A stretch of DNA of 64,000 nucleotides from Guillardia theta CCMP2712 (Eukaryota; Protista; Cryptophyta), in NCBI RefSeq assembly GCF_000315625.1, contig NW_005434613.1, forward strand, positions 430,809-494,808, in the 5' to 3' direction. Both the position numbers and the translations under genes were made by a program. Below, in pieces: positions 46,129 to 63,093 of the stretch (position 1 is its first letter; the number at the start of each line of letters is the position of its first letter). The notes under the pieces are model-generated. The model saw only the letters and a program-made list of their open reading frames with translations. It was not told the origin of the DNA and did not search any database.

Positions 46129-48292
46129 TTAAGCTGTGAGGTCCAACGTGTCTTGCCAGCGACAAGTGAAGGAGCGTCTCAGCTCGTCGGTCATGCTAAG
46201 TAGAAGCCCCAGCCCTCCTTCCAACTCCTCACGTTCCACTCCTGCATCTGACCTGAAGCCCAACAGATCAGAAGACATGAAGCAGACGAAAAGGATGGTG
46301 TTGGTGTTGTTGTTGTTGATGATGATGATGATGATGATGAGGAGGAGGAGGAGGAGGAAAGGGAGAAAGGAGAAGGGGGAGGAGAGGACGATGAAGGTGT
46401 GTAAGAGCGTCGATGAGATCTGGATGAGTTTCCTGACCATCTGATCTCCCGCAGTACATGAAAGTCTCATGGTAGTCTTTGTCGACAAACTTCATCATCT
46501 CCGTCAGGAATGAAGAGGAGGGAGAAAGGAGAGGAGAGGGAGGGAGGGAGGGGAGGGAGGGGAGGGAGGGGAGGGAGGGAGCAGAGAGGTGAAGGGAGGT
46601 GCAAGAGAACGTACCTCCTGCAAGAACAGGACCATCGGCCTCACATCTGATCTGCTTCAACATCAGGAAGGGTTAGGAAGACGTGTGCCACCGTCACAGG
46701 GCACCTGATAGGAGGACCAGAATCGTCCTCAAGGTCGAGACAGAGCTGTCGTTGTACCTCCATTCTGCCGACATCCACGAGCAGCAAGCACTGAGATACG
46801 ATGAACGCACAGCAGGGGAGAGGAGACGGGCTCGTACCCCCGTCGCTCCGCAGCAGAGGAGGGGTCGACCTAGCGTGCGAGGGTTGGGCACGAACTCGAG
46901 GGAGTGTAGAGTTCGGTTAAGATGGAGATCCTGGGAAGGTGTCAGAGAGCAGCAGACTAAACTCGTTCCTCTTACTTTGATTCTTGACCAAGTTGTCATG
47001 TTGTAGAAGACAAGCTTGTTCCTGTCCGCCCCAACGCATCTTCAACAAGCCCGTCACGACTCTCTCCTTTTCGTTGCAGACCACATACAGGATGTCATCG
47101 GAGCACGTCAGGTGCGATATCTCCGCACTTGCATCTTGCACTACGACCCGAGAGACCATCGCGTCCACGTCAATGCAGTGAACCTGTTCCTCCTCTCAGC
47201 CACACGCAGCAGTAGCGGCACGAGACCTGGCTCCCCACACTAGCCACCAGGCACTCCTGCTGCCTGACCCGAGCAAGCTGCATGCAGCTGATGGGCGACA
47301 AAGTGACTGCACAAGCAGTGAGGGGGCGGCAGAGGCGGCAAGGAGCTTGCCAGCAGCTTCTTCTAGCAGGTCCTCCCCTCCTTGTCTCTCCCCTGACTTC
47401 ACCCGCCATCGCTTGATGCTGCCGTCGGATGAGGCCGTGAAGAACCGGCTGCTTCCCTGCTGCCGCACCATTCCCGTCACTCGCCCGGCGTGAGCTTGAA
47501 GTTTCTGAGAGATGAGACGAGGAATGGTCAAGCGAGAGCAGAGGGAGGGAGGGGCGATGAGGGTGAGGAAGAAGTACGCGAGGAGGGAGGGGAAGGGAGG
47601 AGGAGAGGAGGAGAGGAGGAGAGGAGGAGAGGAGGAGAGGAGGAGAGGAGGAGATCTACCTTGCGACATCGCGATGTCTTGATGGACCATACCTTCATCT
47701 CACCACTGGAAGACACGCTGACAAGCATATCCTCGATCGCCTAGTTTGTTGTGAACAAGCAGTCGAAACAGCAGTGAAGGCTCACCAGCAGGCCTCCAAC
47801 CGGATCTCGATGCGCCTGGTACTCATGTACCTTGTCCCAACTGTGATGCATGGATTCTTCTTCCTCTTGATCTCCATCAACATGAACATCATCTTCGCTG
47901 TTTTCTTGACAACAAGTCAGTTTGCAGTCCTGGAGTTTGCGGTCCTGGGAGACGTGGGGAGTACCTGGAGTAGAGTATTCCTTGGTGCAGTAGTACGGGT
48001 ACTTAGAGCGTCCTCGCTTCCACTCCATCTCTACCACCTCCCCTGTCTCCTTTCCCAGAAACAGCTGAGTGCCGTTGGCTGCCATCGCTGTCACACCAAG
48101 ATTCGTTCTCCCTCCTCGCAAGCGAGGTCCCATGCACTCGCTGCCCCCTCTCCTACAGGCTCCTCCTCCTCCTCCTCCTCCTCCTCCTCCTCCTCCTCCT
48201 CCTCTCAGCACGCTGCTTCCTCCTGCTCTGTCCCAGCCTTCGGCATCCGCCGCCATAGCAAGCGCTGCCGCCACCATGGCCAGAATCCGCAT
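46129..48292 (-). CDS. WD40-repeat protein with signal peptide and LRGG leader motif
   Basis: MRILAMVAAALAMAADA signal; RLRGG at 48110-48124; WD40-like QAHRDPVGGL...LVSVSSSGEMKVWS and QAHAGRVTGM...FFTASSDGSIKRW. Confidence 0.7.
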
Positions 48293-48573
48293 GTCGTAGC
48301 CAGGAGATGTGAAGGAATGAGGTCGAAGGGGTCATGTGGAGCATCGAAAGGGGATTGGAGGGGGTGGGGTGGATAATGCGACCAGTGGTGACAATGCGGA
48401 TTTCGAGATGGAGGCGTAGTTTGTGATGGCGGTGGAGGTGATGAGAGAGCGAGAGACAGACAGTCTTGTGATGGAAGACGAGGAGATGTACAAAGAGATG
48501 AGATGGCAAGAAGATCTCTCTCCATGATGATGTCGTGGAAGCAAGGCAATCAAGGGGGAAATCAAACAATCTG

Positions 48574-49769
48574 ATGTACATGGCGGCGAAGAAGTTTGTT
48601 TCCTGCTTGTTGATAGCATGGACTAGTATACCCCAGCAAGAAGGAACAGTTGAGAGAATCTCTCAAACTTCAGAGAGCTCTCCAGCTAGATGCCATCTCT
48701 TGAACTTGCGCGGAGGAGCGGCGGTGATGACTGAGTTCGATGCTCTCGCCAAGAAACTCAGAGGGAATTTCACCTCCTGTTGCTCTTCTCCCCTGAATAT
48801 GCTCGACAGGGTGGCAAAATCGTACAAGAAGAAGATGAAGTTGAGGAAGAAGGAGAAGAAGGAGAAGAAATCACAGACGAGAATCGAGATCTTTGACGAG
48901 CTGCAGGTATTTCATAGTGCAGACAAAGTCGGTTGTCAAGATGACATTCAAGACCAGGTCAAGCATGATGTGCATCAGATGCTCCATGATGTGCATGCCA
49001 TGTTGAAGACAAACGGGACGCTGTTGCAAGTAGCTTTCCTAGCTGCTTTGTCTCTCCACTGACCGGAGCAGAGTCAGCAAATTTCCGGCATCCTCCGTTC
49101 TCTGGAGGCTCTCCCTCCCCTACATGCAGCAGCTGCTGATCTTGTACTCTTCTTTCTTCCTTCTTCCTTCCTCCTTTACCCCTTGCTTCGCTTCTCGTCC
49201 TCGCTGACCTCTTCCTTCGCTTCTCCTCCCTTACCCTTACCTCTCCCTTTGTGCCTCCTTCTCCCTCCCTGACCTCCCGCAGCTCCAGCTCATCCTCTCT
49301 CATCGATCCCGACGACCTCTCCTCCTCCCGGTCGCAGATGTCGCTTGCTCCGACGGTCGACTGAATCAAGAGCTGCAGATGCTGTTCGCCTCTGCCAGAC
49401 TTGTCGCCGCCATGCGCCCTCCTCCTCCGACCCTCCTGTCTATACTCGCTCCTCGGCTTGTCTCTCGACTTTCGTCAGGTAGTGACGTGAAATAGGGAGG
49501 AAACGCAACTATCGTCGTCCTCGTCCTCGTCCTTGTCCTCGTCCTCGTCCTCGTCCTCCTCGTCCTCCTCGTCCTCCTCGTCCTCCTCGTCCTCCTCGTC
49601 CTCCTCGCGCTCGTCGTCCTCTTTCTCCTCTACTTCTCTACCTCTATCTCTTTCTGCTCTCATCTGTCTGATCACGATTGAGAGAATCAACTGAATGTGA
49701 TGCGTCTGCTTCAGAGAACGTGACTATCAGCCCTCGAGAGCTTATGAGGACTGCAGTCTTGTTTCAAAG

Positions 49770-49805
<36 letters not shown>

Positions 49806-52800
49806 CTCGTCCTCCTCGTCCTCCTCGTACTTCTCCTCTTCCCTCTGCGCTGCTCCTTCTGCTCCCCCTTCCTCTCTGCTCTCGTAGAGATAACAAGATG
49901 TGCAGTCGAGGCAAAAGTCACTCTAAGCTCTTCCTCCTGCTCGAGCAGCAGTCACTCAGTCTTGGCCTCTCTGCCTTCTCCCCGCGTCTCTTCATGCGCC
50001 TGGTGTTCGCCATGGCCGAGGGCAAGCAAGGGTCGCCCACGTTCTGGGCCTCTGTGCGTGATCGAGCAAGGAAGATGGCGGTGGAGGGGGAGGGAGCGGA
50101 CGACGTCGCGAGATTCGTGCGAGGAGAGTTTGGGTTCTCCTCCTCCTCACCCTCCCTCAGGCCTGGGCCCTCGGTGTGCGGGGGATCCTCGAGGCCGAGC
50201 CCTTGTGGAGGATGGAGGCGAAGCTGAAGGAGGCGGAGACTGTGAAGAGACTGAGCACACAGGTGAGGCAGGAGGAGGGGAGAGAAGGGCATGGGGGAGG
50301 CGAGAGGGAGGAGGGGCAGGGCAAGAGGAGGCAGCGGTAGGGGTTGCAGGGGAGTGACTCCCGTCAGGCTTGGGCGAAGCTGCTGTGGCTGGTGGCCTCC
50401 TCCCGCAAAGTTTCTCCTGCTCTCGTCGTGTCCTCTCTGCTGCCTGCGACGCTGGGAGGAGCGAAGTTCAGCTCGAAGCTCTCAGCGGAGGTGAAGATGG
50501 GAGGGCTTGGCGGGAGGCTGAGGAGGACGAGCAGGAGCTTGTCAGCGCCGCATGGTCTCTGCAGCAGGTGCTGGAGAGGAAGCAGAGGAGCGAGAAGATG
50601 CAGGAGTGTGCGAAGATCCTGCGAGCAGAGGTGAGTCAGACAAAGCGAAGCAGTTGAGATGGAAGGAGGAGCAGGAGGAGCAGGAGGAGAGGGCGAGCCT
50701 GAGCTTGTTCTTCAGGTTCTGTCGCGTCCTCCGGCCTCTTGCGGCTGGTCTGAGCAGCAGCTGTTTTCCCTCACCAGGAGCATGGCAAACCTCAAAGTCC
50801 TCGACTTGGACAGCCTGCAGCACTTGTACTCCTGCCTGCTGTCCGCCCAGCACAGGGAGGAGAAGATGAATCTGAAGCAGGTGAAAAAAAGAGAGCGTCT
50901 CTCCTCCTTCTCGTTTCTCGACCATTCTCGCTCTCCTCCCTCCCCTTTCTCCTCCTCGCTCTCCTCCCTCCCCTTTCTCCTCCTCGCTCTCCTCCCTCCC
51001 CTTTCTCCTCCTCGCTCTCCTCCCTCCCCTTTCTCCTCCTCGCTCTCCTCCCTCCCCTTTCTCCTCCTCGCTCTCCTCCCTCCCCTTTCTCCTCCTCGCT
51101 CTCCTCCCTCCCCTTTCTCCTCCTCGCTCTCCTCCCTCCCCTTCCTCCTCCTCAGCCTGTCCAACAGATGCAAGACCTCATGCAGGAGGTCGCCAAACTT
51201 TCTCTTCCTCTCTGCCCCGGGGGTCCCGTGCAAGCCTTGTTCAATCACTTAACTGCAAAGGTCTCAAATTCTTGTCTCGCTGCGTTGCTCCTTGCTGGTG
51301 CTGGTGGTGCTGGTGCTGGTGGTGCTGGTGGTGCTGGTGCTGGTGGTGCTGGTGCTGGTGGTGCTGGTGGTGCTGGTGCTGGTGCTGGTGCTGGTGCTGG
51401 TGCTGGTGCTGGTGCTGGTGCTGGTGCTGGTGGTGCTGGTGCTGGTGCTGGTGCTGGTGCTGGTGCTGGTGGTGCTGGTGCTGGTGGTGCTGGTGCTGGT
51501 GCTGGTGCTGGTGCTGGTGCTGGTGCTGGTGCTGGTGCTGGTGCTGGTGGAGCTTCTTGTAGTCTATCTCTCACTATCCTCTAAGGTTTTGGCTCGCCCC
51601 TCGAACGAGTTCGGGTTTCGCTACCTCACCCCCATGTTGTGGTCCTGCGCCAAGTGCCAAGTGCTGTCTCGGGTGTGTCAGGAGGAGGAGGGAGAGTGAG
51701 GGGAAGATCGGGATGGTGGTGGAGAGGGCAGTAGCAGCGAGAAGGGAGGAATGGAAGAGAGAGGGCAGATGAGATGGATGGGAGGACGACAAGGGAGGGA
51801 AGAGGAGGAGGAGGGAGGGAGGGAGGTGAAGAGACGAAGGAGGAGTTTGATGTGTGATGTAGGAGCTGGTGGAAGCAGTCAATGACAGGTTCAGGAGGAA
51901 AGAAGTCCCCATGCCCAAGCCGTCAGTCATGGCCACCATTGCCTGGTCCCTCTCAAGATCTGAATTCCTGGTGGGGAGGGGAAGGGGAAGGGGAAGGGGA
52001 AGAGGAGGAGGGAATATGTAGGAGGAGCAGGGGTAGGAAGGGCTGACACGAGCTTCAGTTGTTTGCTTCCGAGGCCTTCAACTTCATAGCTCAGTCTATC
52101 ACCAGCGCACAGCTCCTTCACTGCACCTCACAGGTACCGCATGCTCCTCTCCCTCCTCCTCTCATCCTCTCTCAGGACGTCGCCAACCTCGTCTGGGCGC
52201 TCGCCCGCAGCTCGCTCGTCCCTCCCACTCATCGCTTCTGGCGAGGTACAGAGAAGTAGCTCTGGTGCTAGTGCTGCTGCTGTTTCTGCTGGTGCTGCTG
52301 GTGCTGCTGCTGCTTCCCTCTATCTTATTCTCTCGATCTTTCGCGCTAACTTGTAATCAGATGTGGAGCAACATCTTCAGGGAGACTTGTCGAGGTCAGC
52401 AGCAGCCCAGCTCCTTCCATCTCAAACGCTCCTCCCTCTAACTCTCCCGCGTCTTCCCTCTCCTCCCCTTCCCCCCCTCTCCCTCTCTCTTCCATCTCTT
52501 CACCTGCTTGTCTCCCTGTCTTCTCTCCCTCATACGCAGCAGGTTCAACGTGCAGGAGCTCGCAAACCTCGCCATGGCAGGCGCCATCCTCGTCTGCGGG
52601 GGAGCAACACCGCTAGCATGGGGAGGAGTGCTCCGCTGCTCACTTGCGCGCGTCGAGCAACTCGGAGAAAGAGAGGCTGCGCAGGTATAGGAGGAGGAGG
52701 AGGAGGAGGAGGAGGAGGAGGAGGAGGAGGAGGAGGAGGAGGAGGAGGGCGACGGCTGAACTCCTACAGGTTGCGATGCTCCACCTGGCAAGCTTACCCG

Positions 52801-57108: not shown

Positions 57109-57204
57109 TCACGTCTTCCTCCGTTTAGCTCGGGACATCTCTGACAACATACTGTCACAGCTTTTAGCGAGCTGACCAAAACTTTCGTCGTCGTCGTCTT
57201 TGTG

Positions 57205-57258
<54 letters not shown>

Positions 57259-58545
57259 GTCATCGTATTCTGCATCGTGCACTTCCTCCTCCTCCTTGCT
57301 GTCTTCATCATCGCATTCCGAATCCAGGATTCGATTAAACTCCGCATAATTACGATCAAAGTCTCCGGATGAAAGGCTATCTGCTTCGATGTCGCCTTCC
57401 GAGATCTCAATGACTTCTGTATCAAGTTCTGCCTCTCCACGCTCCGTCTCAGCGCTCTCCCTCTCTCTCTCAGCTCTCCTCCGCCCCCTCTCCGCCTGTA
57501 CTCGCTGCTTCTCCGCTCCCTCCCGCTTCTGCTCGCCGTCGACTCGCTGCTTCTCCGCTCCCTCCCGCTTCTGCTCGCCGTCGACTCGCTGCTTCTCCGC
57601 CTCCACCCGCTTCTGCTCGCCGTCGACTCGCTGCTTCTCCGCTCCCTCCCGCTTCTGCTCGCCGTCGACTCGCTGCTTCTCCGCCTCCACCCGCTTCTGC
57701 TCGCCGTCGACTCGCTGCTTCTCCGCCTCCACCCGCTTCTGCTCGCCGTCGACTCGCTGCTTCTCCGCTCCCTCCCGCTTCTGCTCGCCGTCGACTCGCT
57801 GCTTCTCCGCTCCCTCCCGCTTCTGCTCGCCGTCGACTCGCTGCTTCTCCGCTCCCTCCCGCTTCTGCTCGCCGTCGACTCGCTGCTTCTCCGCCTCCAC
57901 CCTCTTCTGCTCGCCGTCGACTCGCTGCTTCTCCGCCTCCACCCGCTTCTGCTCGCCGTCGACTCGCTGCTTCTCCGCTCCCTCCCGCTTCTGCTCGCCG
58001 TCGACTCGCTGCTTCTCCGCCTCCACCCGCTTCTGCTCACGGTCTTGTCGTTGTTGCTCTTGAGCATCTCGCTTGGTCTCTTGCGCTTGTCGGTGTTCGT
58101 CATGTTGCACCACTTGCCTCATCAATTCGGCCCAATGATTAACGCGATCGCTCAGTTCTTGACATTTTTCTTCGGCTTTTTGACATCTTTGCTCGGCGTC
58201 TGTACATCTTTTTTGCAATTCTTGCATTTCTTTCATGATCAACGAGTAGTTTATCTCCTGGTGTTGGCTGTAAATCTCGGGTTGCGCTTCAGGACGCACA
58301 GGTCTGGGGGGCTTGCATCCCCTCCTTGCAACGTTCGAGTACTGCATGTCACCCGTTTCAGTCTCGCTCGTTTGCCGCTCCTGAGTGTCAAGGTCCTCCA
58401 TCACTGAAAGTGGAAGCAGCCCAGCAGGCGAGTGGTTCTGGCCCGCTACATGCTCGTGGCGCCCAGCCGCTTCGTTGCGCACCTCCACAGGACATTGAGC
58501 AAGTGCTTGCTGACGCAAATCATGAAAAATTGACGAACTTGCCAT
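57109..58545 (-). CDS. Intronless coiled-coil protein with 13 x 14-aa repeats, poly-Asp tract and basic C-terminus
   Basis: MASSSIFHDL start at 58545; EQKR(VE/EG)AEKQRVDG x13; acidic tract; C-terminal RAKRRKT is NLS-like. Confidence 0.65.
57493..58038. repeat. Coding 42-bp minisatellite, 13 copies, two main variants
   Basis: 546 bp = 13 x 42. Protein-order pattern A B A A B B B A A B A B B (A = VE, B = EG). Confidence 0.95.
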
Positions 58546-59200
58546 ATCTGTCAGAGCAGTCAGTAAATTCGATTGAATCACTAGGGAAGCTGAGGTAGGA
58601 AACGACCAGCATTAAATTTAGATAAAAACGAAGCAGGCACTGCAGTCTGCTCTCTTCCCCTCTCCCTCTCCCTCTTCTTGTCTCTCTCCTTTTCACTCTC
58701 CCTCCTTCTCCCTCCCTCTTCCTCTCCTCCCTCCCTCCCTCTGCCTCCTCTCCCTGTCCCTCCCTGTCCCTCCCTGTCCCTCCCTGTCCCTCCCTGTCCC
58801 TTCCTGCCTGCCTGCAGTCGTCCTCTCTCCTGCCATCAGGCTATAGGTTCGTGGCAAAACTACCCCTACCTACCGACTGTGTAAAACCCCTACCCCCACA
58901 AAGCCGTACTTCTTATGGTACCCCTCATTATAAGTGAAAATACCCCACCCTTTGATAAGCCAAACTTTAGTGATTTACGTCAGACCCCAGCAGATCACTC
59001 CGTTCACTACCCCTACCAGCTCCAGCGGACAATCCCACAAAACATGGTGAAATTTCACAGTATATTTGAATTATTTCGTGAATATTTCGAATGTGATGCA
59101 GAATAAATGTCGTGGGGCATCAAACTCCTGCCGAAGCAACCAAAAAAAAAAACTTAACCTTTAATCGACAAAAGGACTCCCGAAGGAGTCCTGGACCAGC

Positions 59201-61334
59201 ATGACAGGGGTCATTGATAGGTTTCAATCACCCATCCAATGGGGCTGTATGAGGGTCTTAAAAAAGAAAAAAAAATCTTCCCGCCTTCCCGGAGTCCGAC
59301 GGAAAGTTTGTGGCTGCTCGTTTCATCTTTATTCAAAACCATTCACGAGAGTCGTCAAATGTGGGTTATACTCGAGACTCAAGGCAGAGAACAGATCGAT
59401 TTTAGACGTGATCGACAGATGGGTATTACATATCAGTCAGATCACATCAAGAGGCAGTATGATATTCAACTGTTTTCTGATATGGGGCAGGGATACAGGG
59501 AATTTACGATATGTAGTGGATGAAATCAAGAGAGCCAAATCGACCTTTTTCTGGAATGTTTTTACACTTGGAATGGAACAACATAGCCGTACAGATAACA
59601 AGTATCCAACTCTACAACGTTTCTGGTCAGAGAAAAGACATCTTTTCGTTGATTTATGTAGAATTCGAGGAGACTCGCAAGCTATTGTATTCGCTGCAAA
59701 TCAATATGGAACGAATTTCTACCAAGACCTGAAAGCAAATTTTACAAACCGATTGGAAAAGTTCATTGCCGAATTCTGCAAAGGAGAGTTACATATTAAC
59801 CATCAGCAAGAAATCGAAGACGTGAAGAATGTATTGTTTCAAAGGAAAGATTACGAGTTGAAGACAGAAGTGTTTAACAGGAATAATTCACAGCAGATAG
59901 GAACCTTCATCGACCATATGAAACAACTAATTGGATTATCGGGGTACGAAGATCTTTTTAGTTTCAAATATGACAAATTTGATCATAGGTTGCAGAAAAA
60001 TCTGTTTGAGATAATCGAGACACACATGTTCATGTTGAAGTTCTTCGAAGATCGTGGTCTCTCGAAAAAAACATTCAAGGCAGCACCAATGTCGAAATTC
60101 GGCAGAAAACATCTAACAATCGATAATGATGTGATGTATTACATTTTGAAAGAAGCGAACAGTTTGAAACCGGGAGAAGATAAAAAATCGTTCATGAGAA
60201 TAGATCAAACTTTGGAGAACTCTAAGAATTTCAGAAGGATTTTCGACTGTTCGAATCTGTTCAGAGATCAGAGAGAGGAGATTACAAGTATCACGACAGA
60301 CGGTGTATCGGTTTGTTTTCGCTTCACGTTAATTGTCAAAACAATCGATGGACTCGAACAGGAACCTTCATTGCGCACTACCAAATGGCTTGCCGATAGA
60401 AAAAGGGCTGAACGGAAATCGGCGAAGAAGATATCAATATCATACAAAGTATTACATGAAAATTCAGAATACCAAAGAGAGATCGAAGAATGTAAAAATT
60501 GCCCAAGGGTAATTGCGATCGACCCTGGGAGGAGCGTCATTATATCGGCCGTCGAACAATTCAGAGATGATCAACAAATAATCAGAAAAAGATTTCAGTT
60601 TTCGAGAAAACAATATTATCACGAGTCACATCTGAATCGCAATAAAAAGAAAAGAAAGACGTGGGATCAAGATATTCAATCGACATTGCACTATCTCAAG
60701 GGGTTCTCGAGTAAGTCTGGCGGCAGTCTATCAAGATTCGAAGACTATCTTCTTGCAGTTACAAGTCATTGGGAGGAGTTAACTTCGCATTATTCAAAGC
60801 GAAAATACGCCAGGATGAAATTCGACATCTACATTTCGAAACGAAAGTCAGTCGACAGGTTTATCCGTACAATGAAAGGAAAGGGAGAAATAGAACCTGT
60901 TATCGCATATGGAAATGCAAGGTTCCCGTCTACAGGACGTCGAGGAGAAAGGCCTGTACCGGTCAGGTGGATAAGAAGAAGATTCGAGAATCACTACAGA
61001 GTCGTAGATGTTGACGAATACCGTACTACCAAGTGCTGTAACGATTGTGGTTCTGAGCTCGATGTGCTTCGACGGATTGAAAATACAGGGAAAGAACCAG
61101 ACGAGACCTGTAGGTTGAAAACAAGGAAAAGTGAAGTACGAGGATTGAAATTTTGCAGATCATCGAGGTAATGTCAAGTTTTGTATACTCCTGTAATTCA
61201 CCTTTTCATCTAACTGTTATCGTGACAGCTGTAAAGGAAAGCCGATCAAATCCAGGGACTTGAATGCTGCACTGAATATACTCACTTGTTTCAATGTGTT
61301 TCCTGAAAGACCGAATCACCTACGTCGCCCCTGA
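59201..61334 (+). CDS. Fz1: Fanzor1 RNA-guided DNA endonuclease (TnpB/Cas12 family), 690 aa; exons 59201-61167 and 61229-61334
   Basis: SITTDGVSV; RuvC-I VIAIDPGRSVII (D441); IAYGNARF (Gly at the canonical Glu position); shifted catalytic Glu in VDEYRTTKCCNDC (E606); Zn finger CCNDC...CRSS|SC; RuvC-III SRDLNAALNI (D666) in exon 2; N-terminal KKKKK NLS-like motif. Confidence 0.95.
61168..61228 (+). other. 61-bp phase-2 spliceosomal intron in the Fanzor gene
   Basis: AG|GTAATG donor, CTAAC branch site at 61210-61214, ACAG| acceptor. Splicing restores the frame through RuvC-III to TGA at 61332-61334. Confidence 0.92.
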
Positions 61335-61548
61335 GGTGAATTCAATGATTGTTGTCGCCCCCTCCCTACCCAGACTGCGTCCCTCGGGACTCGATGCCTA
61401 ATTCCCTGCCTGCCTGCCTGCCCGGTGCCTGCCTCCATTATGATCCGATGTTTACGACATGTGATCATTGAAGTGACTGACTGGCATCATTTGGTAGGAT
61501 TCATGTAAGGCTCCAACAACATCCGAAGACAATTTGGCAAAAAAAAAC

Positions 61549-61726
61549 AACTGCCGTTGTATGACGGAGAGTCGCGGCTCTCAATCATACGACGGCAGTT
61601 CTGTGCGAAAACTTAGTTCGTCGTTCAGAAGGGTATTCACATATTCCGTCACATCATGAGGGAGAGTACCCGTGGTAGATAGATTCGTGGCGTTTATCTA
61701 TTAAAGTTACAAAAAACAAGTTTCAC
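61549..61726 (+). ncRNA. Candidate Fanzor omegaRNA (scaffold ~61549-61706 plus flank-derived guide from ~61707)
   Basis: Hairpin 1 at 61549-61600 (16-bp stem with one G.U plus a GAGAG/CTCTC upper stem); hairpin 2 GGGTATTC/GAGTACCC at 61631-61671; hairpin 3 TAGATAGA/TTTATCTA at 61676-61700. All non-Watson-Crick stem pairs are G.U on the + strand. Lies downstream of the ORF and abuts the element end. Confidence 0.7.
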
Positions 61727-63093
61727 TTAACCGCCGGGGTGGTTCCTATCGTGAGTCTACCCCCCGGGCCCCGGGCTGAATCTTCAGTGTCGCTCAGTTG
61801 TTCCCCCGGGCCCGAGGTGGGGGATGAGGGGCACAAATCCGAGTGGGGATGAGGGCCCAGCGCGCACATAAGGAGACGACGGGTGGTCTGCAAATGGAGG
61901 CGGATCTATGGTAAGAAAGAGGGGTAGTATACGAGGGGGGTGGAGACAGATTTGTATCTTGGGGGTGGGGTATTTGAGCATTGGGGTAGAGGTCCAAATG
62001 GAGTACATGGAAGGGGGTGAAAGCAGAGCATTCATAGTACCCGAAATAGTCTGAAGAGGGGGTACTAGGGAGAGAGGGTCTGTTCATCAGGGGTACCAGT
62101 GTTTTTTTTGAGGGAAGGGGGTACATAGAAAAGCATGATCGAGAAGGTCTGGCATAGGGGGTGGGGTAGAAAGGAGAGGGGTGGGGGTAGGGGGTCACGA
62201 GGTTGGAGGCCGCGAGGAGAGGCCGCCATGATGAAGAAGGTGAGGGCGACAAAAATGAGAAGAAGATGAGAAGATGAGAAGATGAGAAGACGATCAGTTG
62301 ATATAATGATGATGTGATGATGCTGTACGTCATGATGGCGAAGATATGTCGATTAGAGGAGGTGGAGCTAGCGCTTGATATGAAAATTGTATCGTACAAT
62401 GGTGGAAGCGATAGATACCAGTCGGTTTTACCAGAAGTGAAGAGAGTGTAAAAGTAGATGATCGATTCCTGTTGTAACAAGAGTAAGAATGAGAACCAAG
62501 TGACGCAAAGGCTAAGTTGACAGCAAAGAAAGGGTACATAGACATCTATTATAGAGTTTGTGAGCATGACGTCATTGGGGGTAGTTTGTTTAAGTCAAGG
62601 AGTACAGGGACGTGTGAGAGTCGCTGGCAAAGTATTTGAAGTTAAGAGAAGTCAGTTTCATGTGATGTATCAAAGAACATTCGTTTCCATGATCCACTGG
62701 AACAGCACTATGGTTATGAAGTCAGATGTCACTTGGAAAGTCTCTGTGCCTAATGGGATGGAGAGAGGGGAGGAGATGAGAATTTAGATCGATGAAATGT
62801 TGTTGGAATGAGTGAGTACTTTATGAAGCTATCGATAGGTTATGTTCTCAGATGCATCTGATGGATGGTGGTGTTGATGCTTGAAGATGGGATTTGTTTT
62901 TGTGGACCATGGAGTGATACTCCATGATGGCGATGAGAGGTCGATATGAGAGTCCTTTGATCTGTCAATGGTGTACGCAGCTTAGTAGCAATGTCGACAG
63001 TAGAAGCAGCCGGTAGGAGCAGCCGGTAGGAGCAGCCGGTACCAGTGAAGCAGTAGTGACAAGCAAGGAAGTCAAAGGATGTAACACGATAAG

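Follow-up and report, generated by a model that had tools for sequence, protein, structure and literature searches.

Does the Fanzor-like gene near the right end of the stretch analysed here mark a complete and intact RNA-guided nuclease system in the cryptophyte alga Guillardia theta CCMP2712, and is it the system already characterised from this alga as GtFz1? Fanzors are, to our knowledge, the only eukaryotic RNA-guided DNA nucleases known, and they are under development as compact genome editors. The window, which is the whole stretch of 64,000 nucleotides, corresponds to G000:C61:430809-494808 in an assembly of 87.1 Mb and 669 contigs. A sequence-only reading had placed the system correctly in an algal nuclear genome. 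We propose, with a probability of roughly 0.85, that window positions 59154-61704 are one copy of a young, multi-copy, non-autonomous G. theta DNA transposon, which carries the gene of a CRISPR-Cas12-like nuclease (Fanzor1) and a probable guide RNA scaffold (ωRNA) as cargo and is distinct from GtFz1. The window-type element is called family A below, and family B is a sister Fanzor1 element family in the same genome.

The gene consists of two exons and is followed by a further intron:

59201-61167 (+): exon 1 as read in the window copy, encoding the REC and WED domains, RuvC-I/II and the first half of the TNB zinc finger
59201-59329 (+): codons 1-43, read-through of the 5' untranslated region (UTR) from an upstream ATG; the canonical gene runs from codon 44 onward and the alignable protein from K46
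61168-61228 (+): intron 1, 61 nt, GT..AG, phase 2, splitting the Cx4C half of the zinc finger
61229-61334 (+): exon 2 (...SCKGKPIKSRDLNAALNIL...), encoding RuvC-III with D666; stop codon TGA at 61332-61334
61336-61497 (+): 3'-UTR intron, 162 nt, GT..AG, beginning 1 nt past the stop codon

The open reading frame (ORF) listed for the window, 59201-61171 (+), terminates in a TAA (61169-61171) that falls at the start of intron 1 and would end translation of an unspliced transcript. Removal of intron 1 joins exon 1 to 61229-61334 and yields an in-frame protein of 690 aa. RNA evidence came from assembled contigs of runs that behave as RNA and from the raw reads of one stranded run (X14); the joint 61167/61229 is present in a contig of run X1. 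The splice at 61168-61228 is also confirmed by 30 homologues that are uninterrupted through WCxSTxC...RDxNAAxNIL. Producing the protein requires excision of this 61-nt intron. It is kept in the diverged C1 copy and absent from family B. The joint of the 3'-UTR intron was found in runs X1 and X2, and this intron too is present in the C1 copy, where it is enlarged by a microsatellite. The spliced 690-aa frame of the sequence-only reading is thus borne out, and all of its motifs are found exactly at the positions it gave: IDPGR (D441), IAYGN (568-572), the glutamate of VDEYR (E606), the zinc-finger cysteines C613xxC616 and, in the second half of the TNB finger, C652x4C657, and RDLNAA (D666). In the alignment with the 30 homologues D441, G571 and E606 are invariant, and RDxNAA is at least 90% conserved.

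The hallmark of Fanzors is a rearranged RuvC site (Jiang et al., 2023, PMC10530073): Asp in RuvC-I, an inert Gly or Pro at the old RuvC-II glutamate position, an alternative glutamate that precedes the zinc finger, and Asp or Asn in RuvC-III. The window protein shows this rearrangement, with G571 (in IAYG) at the old position and the glutamate about 35 residues downstream. A family profile searched against the whole PDB matched PpFz1 (E 1.6e-31), SpuFz1 (E 1e-30) and GtFz1 (E 9.5e-20) and no others. The SpuFz1 match is nearly end to end (profile positions 7-589 of 595), and SpuFz1 is also found by phmmer with the single window sequence (E 9.5e-7). The AlphaFold2 (AF2) model covers exon 1 (655 aa), with exon 2 and its RuvC-III lying outside it, and reaches a pLDDT of 77.7 and a pTM of 0.76. 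In a Foldseek search with this model ranks 1-7 are all Fanzor1 chains (SpuFz best, with PpFz and GtFz; E 9e-20 to 2e-15, TM 0.51-0.65), followed by Cas12h/f at E of 2e-4 or higher only, and the comparison recovers the bilobed REC-WED-RuvC-TNB fold of Fanzor1. The Pfam match of exon 1 alone to Cas12f1-like_TNB is weak (E 0.029) because the intron cuts the domain; the intact homologues P0013 and P0032 exceed the Pfam cut-off. An exhaustive search returned 1369 relatives at E <= 1e-3; among those with a name, the nearest belong to the cryptophyte Hanusia phi (36% identity) and to Marseillevirus LCMAC101. A scan of viral contigs with the Marseillevirus homologue P0013 gave zero confirmed matches. 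The window gene is therefore a Fanzor1 of TnpB descent, as had been claimed, with a canonical Asp-Glu-Asp site (D441, the relocated E606 and D666).

The closest known systems are SpuFz1 of Spizellomyces punctatus (PDB 8GKH, 9CEU-9CEZ) and PpFz1 of Parasitella parasitica (9CF0-9CF3), with a full-length profile match and a fold match that includes REC, WED, RuvC and TNB. They share with the window family the D-E-D triad, the relocated glutamate ahead of the zinc finger and a basic start resembling a nuclear localization signal (NLS), which is MPRKRKR in canonical G. theta copies and MPPKKKQK in SpuFz1/PpFz1. By analogy, the ωRNA of both would be expected to derive from a non-autonomous element, at its 3' end. 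Identity in the structural alignment is, however, about 16%, and the window element, known here from sequence and models, differs in having two spliceosomal introns, no terminal inverted repeats (TIRs) and a predicted target-adjacent motif (TAM) of TTAW rather than CATA or ATN.

The relation to GtFz1 can be settled by position. The published ωRNA of GtFz1 has the coordinates NW_005434667:896451-896603 (Xu et al., 2024, Table S3, PMC11423790), and its first 40 nt match G000:C7:896451-896490 exactly, whereas the window lies on C61. On C7, GtFz1 is an intronless 690-aa ORF (G000:C7:894431-896503; L033:1432-3504) that is identical to PDB 9cer/9ces/9cet (E 0). BLASTP of GtFz1 against the window protein returned a single 51-aa stretch with 18/51 identities (35%), and GtFz1 is absent among the 88 genome matches of the window-protein search. 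With GtFz1 on C7, the window on C61 and similarity over 51 aa alone, the window gene is not the GtFz1 locus, and its family is a lineage separate from the published one. The only G. theta Fanzor loci named by Saito et al. (2023) are scaffold_7 and scaffold_348.

GtFz1 (PDB 9CER-9CET; scaffold_7) and the window family have in common their genome, the Fanzor1 class, a TTAA-type TAM or target, the lack of inverted repeats and the lack of a transposase within the element. They differ in locus and are very distant in sequence (the profile matches GtFz1 at E 9.5e-20 and the fungal proteins at 1e-30). GtFz1 carries N658 in RuvC-III (D-E-N) where the window family has the canonical Asp; it is intronless, occurs in 2 copies and has an ωRNA that overlaps its coding sequence (CDS), whereas the window family has about 14 copies, an intron in the CDS and a further intron between CDS and scaffold. 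The ωRNA sequences of the two are unrelated. The idea that the window is the published GtFz1 locus or a near copy of it could appeal to the shared organism, the shared TTAA motif at the ends and the same length of 690 aa, which is a coincidence; against the published ωRNA coordinates on C7, the identity of the C7 ORF to PDB 9cer, the 18/51 identities and the differences in introns, RuvC-III and ωRNA it can be dismissed with near certainty. Of the two identities that the sequence-only reading had offered, the GtFz1 locus thus drops out, and 'paralogue' is true in the most distant sense alone, as the window protein scores nearer to the fungal SpuFz1/PpFz1. Directly upstream of GtFz1, at L033:560-1129 (G000:C7:893559-894128), a 189-aa ORF has a match to DDE_3, a Tc1/IS630-like DDE endonuclease, of 27.4 bits against a Pfam cut-off of 28.6 bits. 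GtFz1 has been described as having no clear transposase association (Saito et al., 2023).

Comparison of copies across the genome defines the element and its limits:

59154-59157: left TTAA, candidate 5' copy of a 4-bp target-site duplication (TSD) and predicted TAM (family consensus TTAW, copies aligned)
59158-61700 (+): element body, 2543 bp in the window copy (canonical copies: about 2.7 kb); 98-100% identical at about 10-14 other loci with unrelated flanks
59174-59191 (+): left subterminal perfect hairpin GGACTCC-CGAA-GGAGTCC, near-invariant, with one 3'-arm substitution in L002
61701-61704: right TTAA, candidate 3' TSD copy and true right limit of family similarity
61726-61732: a second CTTAACC, identical to 59153-59159, within unique flank; taken as the right end in the sequence-only reading

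The genome contains about 14 right ends and 11 left ends of this element at 91-100% identity, and the Fanzor gene is the sole ORF of the body. In every copy similarity to the window begins at 59153/59154 and ends at 61703-61709, which gives the ends TTAW/CCTTTAATC…ATCTA/TTAW. At the left junction unrelated flank closes in TTAA or TTAT before CCTTTAATCGAC in 10 of the 11 left-end copies (L007 has AGTT). At the right junction the element finishes in ...GCGTTTATCTA, followed by TTAA or TTAT (once TTAG) and then by unrelated DNA; 13 copies diverge directly after ...GCGTTTATCTATTAW, which is window position 61704, and three more diverged or solo right ends likewise close in TTAA. The fourth base is the same on the left and the right in 9 of 10 copies (TTAA/TTAA in six, TTAT/TTAT in three, one mixed). 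The simplest reading of these aligned junctions is that the TTAW flanks are a 4-bp TSD. The left end of the element as previously drawn (59159-61726) was correct to within 1-5 nt and its right end lay 22 nt too far; the candidate TAM proposed with it is found as the TTAA at the left junction, where it remains a candidate.

The window's left flank is unique in the genome, so no larger host transposon surrounds this copy. The body holds no transposase gene. At least ten matches to piggyBac-type (DDE_Tnp_1_7) transposases exceed the cut-off genome-wide, several of them in open frames of 670-800 aa (for example G000:C1:917360-918118, C21:234111-235178 and C181:11687-12760), and these genes could account for TTAA-specific transposition in G. 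theta. A search for termini common to the element and the genomic piggyBac-type transposons found none. Two solo right-end relics, G000:C6:622662-622708 and C36:78961-78991, close in TTAA, lack a Fanzor gene and lie beside ordinary host genes; no transposase was found beside them, their neighbours being host genes (glycosyltransferase 20, DMT) or sequence without a Pfam match.

The region downstream of the 3'-UTR intron most likely encodes a Fanzor1 ωRNA, as judged from its predicted fold:

61498-61704 (+): putative ωRNA scaffold, with hairpins at 61550-61599, 61600-61629 and 61631-61671 and a terminal 12-bp stem
61705-61724 (+): predicted guide segment of the window copy, in the unique flank AGTTACAAAAAACAAGTTTC and starting AGTTACAAAAAACAAG...; length of about 15-20 nt by analogy with other Fanzor1 systems

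The scaffold has a minimum free energy of -71.4 kcal/mol (z -6.06), which none of 200 shuffled sequences equalled, and it is 100% identical in nine copies. In the predicted fold TTA, the invariant part of the right TSD, is base-paired within the terminal stem (61673-61684/61692-61703). The structured 3' region claimed earlier thus stands, with four hairpins rather than three, and the inverted terminus said to close it does not. An Rfam scan of 58900-62100 at E <= 1 found nothing. Fanzor1 guide RNAs incorporate the TSD into their scaffold, and the guide covers about the next 15 nt (Yoon et al., 2023, PMC10711439), and the 5' TSD forms part of the TAM (2026 review, PMC13565253). By this analogy we infer that TTAW is the TAM and that the window guide begins at 61705, after the scaffold end ...ATCTATTAA; the right flank from which it would be read is unique in the genome. 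The guide position proposed before was off by 22-26 nt, since the right boundary is 61704.

The window copy itself carries a lesion not seen in its relatives:

59329/59330 (+): window-specific 168-nt deletion junction; the lost part holds the canonical ATG and MPRKRKRITDDSDNGQEIS

The 168-nt segment is present in every other copy aligned there (L004 has 48 nt less) and reads ATG CCG AGG AAG AGA AAA CGA..., that is MPRKRKRITDDSDNGQEIS, in frame with YSKPFTRVV.... The edges of the gap do not conform to GT..AG and share a TT microhomology, and the gap is therefore a deletion and not an intron. The canonical protein has 666 aa with the NLS-like start MPRKRKR and is intact in four copies (C111, C87, C23 and C29). 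The ATG at 59201 starts an upstream ORF in other copies; in the window its frame is open through all 690 codons. As a result of the deletion the 690-aa ORF opens with about 45 non-native residues read through from the 5' UTR, in line with a pLDDT of about 31 for residues 1-44. Compared with each of the four intact copies, the core of the window protein shows 3-6 residue differences (5-12 of 1935 nt). The element had been described as complete and intact: this holds for the catalytic core, which is whole, and not for the N-terminus, where the deletion removed the native ATG and the NLS-like motif.

Transcripts of the family were found on both strands. On the sense strand the RNA contigs contain the intron-1 joint and, in two runs, the joint of the 3'-UTR intron. 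A contig that matches 61496-61705 continues for another 193 nt in the sequence that flanks the C40 copy and so documents read-through of a right end. The contigs also contain four CT..AC joints, which correspond to a spliced antisense transcript:

60408-61285 (-): spliced antisense transcription, with GT..AG introns at 60408-60472, ~60524-60761, 60829-60896 and 61229-61285

These joints occur in runs X1, X2 and X3 (2-3 runs each) and in two raw reads of X14. Because the CT..AC reads have the same mate orientation as nearly all gene-body reads of this stranded run, those reads are probably antisense. The antisense RNA could reflect host silencing or a read-in promoter. None of the RNA contigs listed crosses the junction 59329/59330, and no piled-up RNA ends were seen at the element in the RNA runs. 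Some contigs join the 5' region of the element (window 59154 and 59231) to flanks ...GATGACTTAAG and ...GCGCCTTTATG, which occur in no compared locus; they represent either further copies or transcripts that read in from outside.

Several observations weigh against reading the locus as a TTAA-type transposon with a functional Fanzor1 and ωRNA. Empty sites for the window copy and the C29 copy, sought as proof of the TSD, are not present in the assembly. TTAT ends are confined to one subfamily, and therefore lineage inheritance of the end base may explain the agreement seen there. No TIR above shuffled sequences was detected, neither at the true ends nor at those drawn in the sequence-only reading, which removes the inverted terminus claimed there; the sole TIR-like match, CTTTAAT(N)GA, relies on flank bases found in three copies. 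The lack of a TIR weakens the tie to a piggyBac/Kolobok-type transposase. Covariation analysis of the window, the 72%-identical C1 copy, the C6 relic, C38 and family B gave 0 compensatory pairs and a weak consensus, so that the ωRNA structure is predicted from folding energy only, and the 3' RNA of family B has a different predicted fold. On the protein side, 6 of 11 near-full copies have premature stops. Finally, the gene-body reads of the stranded run appear antisense, and a long RNA contig carries the 168-nt segment together with alleles of other copies, so expression attaches to the family and not to the window copy.

The limits and mobility of the element have been weighed against two other readings. 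The element could run to 61726, with the CTTAACC repeats as a true duplication and 61705-61725 as element sequence. This would account for the exact 7-nt repeat at 59153-59159 and 61726-61732. Carry-over of flank does occur: the C30 copy (L007, G000:C30:~317360-320148) has exactly 66 nt of the right flank of its sister C29 copy (L005, G000:C29:~422129-424998) after its TTAA and lacks the usual left TTAW, which indicates repair-type copying or aberrant transposition, and both loci would emit the same guide. Yet every other copy diverges at 61704/61705, the 22-nt spacer is found nowhere else in the assembly and the CC of the left heptamer belongs to the element body, which invariably starts with it; we therefore regard a right end at 61726 as very unlikely. 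The second CTTAACC may be a coincidence or the trace of a carried 22-nt flank; a parent copy with a right flank starting AGTTACAAAAAACAAGTTTCA, the 22-nt flank of the window, was not found in the assembly. Mobility of a single-strand type, as in IS200/IS605 or Helitrons, would make the left TTAW a target or TAM and the right TTAW the element's own cleavage site, with no TSD. The missing TIRs, the subterminal hairpins at both ends, the restriction of TTAT ends to one subfamily and the IS605 targets TTTAA/TTAAC (PMC13565253) would suit this mechanism. It predicts no agreement of the fourth TTAW base between left and right, however, which is seen in 9 of 10 copies of the family and 2 of 3 of family B. 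No Y1/HUH transposase gene occurs in or beside any copy examined, and the eukaryotic Fanzor1 elements described to date ride TSD-forming transposons (PMC10711439). Such mobility thus seems unlikely, if somewhat less so than a right end at 61726.

A rival with nearly even odds concerns the window copy alone: it may be a dead relic as a protein source and supply at most an ωRNA, as a ghost-like locus, for the proteins of the four intact copies. The 168-nt deletion of start codon and NLS, the disordered non-native N-terminus and the origin of the RNA contigs in other copies speak for this, as does the state of the family, in which most copies are already broken and silent changes are not over-represented among the substitutions that separate them (3 aa per 5 nt). 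The frame from the upstream ATG at 59201 is nevertheless open through 690 codons, the catalytic core lies 3-6 aa from the intact copies and the replacement N-terminus is rich in lysine and arginine (KKKKKSSRLPGVRRK), as judged from its sequence, and could still permit import.

For the TTAA-type transposon with a Fanzor1 and a probable ωRNA, the following cycle can be proposed. A transcript through the right end would be processed into an ωRNA whose scaffold closes with the right TTAW, partly in the terminal stem, and whose guide would be the next ~15-20 nt of flank (from 61705 onward). The ribonucleoprotein would recognise TTAW as TAM together with the guide-matching sequence, which is the empty donor site after excision. 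Excision by a TTAA-type transposase acting in trans would supply mobility, and cutting of the empty donor site would favour restoration of the element by homologous repair. Repair-type copying may have carried flank at least once, in the C30 copy with its 66 nt of C29 flank. In insect-virus and lepidopteran Fanzor1 elements (SfAV; Yoon et al., 2023, PMC10711439) the element is likewise non-autonomous, with Fanzor1 as only cargo and a short TSD predicted to lie within the last guide-RNA stem, the guide starting beyond it. Those elements differ in their clear TIRs and in an reRNA proven by small-RNA sequencing, whereas the window ωRNA is known from folding alone.

Family B, likewise abundant, is a second Fanzor1 family of this genome (e.g., G000:C78:~47290-50223; loci L023-L030 and L044-L048). 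Eight copies were compared, most with an open frame of 644-646 aa, and the protein is 48% identical to the window family in the RuvC/TNB half. Its ends are ATAW/TGGTTAAGTG...GTTTAGCTA/ATAW, and its right end is homologous to that of the window family (GTCGTTTAGCTA/ATAW versus GGCGTTTATCTA/TTAW), with the same 4-bp flank logic; the fourth base of the flank agrees between left and right in 2 of 3 copies. Unlike family A, it is intronless at RuvC-III and has a longer 5' region that bears tandem repeats rich in GGGGTGGGTACC motifs. Further Fanzor1 lineages are found at C72:356549-358276 (34% identity) and C201:4548-6188 (40%). In the window the element is intergenic and lies about 570 nt from the start of a neighbour ORF (57109-58581, -; 490 aa), in which a 42-nt repeat, coding for a charged 14-residue unit (EQKRVEAEKQRVDG-like), occurs 12.8 times; a CT-rich microsatellite occupies 58650-58805 between the two.

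The family belongs to a known kind, Fanzor1, and forms no new category; what is new is an uncharacterised lineage with a well-defined anatomy. It is doubtful that it amounts to an active second G. theta Fanzor1 system, with a D-E-D site, a relaxed TTAW TAM, output gated by splicing (the zinc-finger intron and the intron between CDS and ωRNA) and partial spread by flank-carrying repair copying. If it did, such copying would give several loci a common guide, by which they would protect one another in trans; in the window, 22 nt may be flank brought along from a lost parent. GtFz1 is among the few characterised Fanzors and is odd in its D-E-N site, in giving no editing in human cells and in the reported lack of inverted repeats. 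G. theta also holds a separate Fanzor1 family that is far more abundant and very young, with a canonical triad and exact limits. Its TTAW flank is at the same time the candidate TAM, and four of its copies are intact. The family provides a second test case within one organism for the co-evolution of TAM, TSD and ωRNA scaffold, for the interplay of splicing and ωRNA biogenesis, and for what mobilises these elements.

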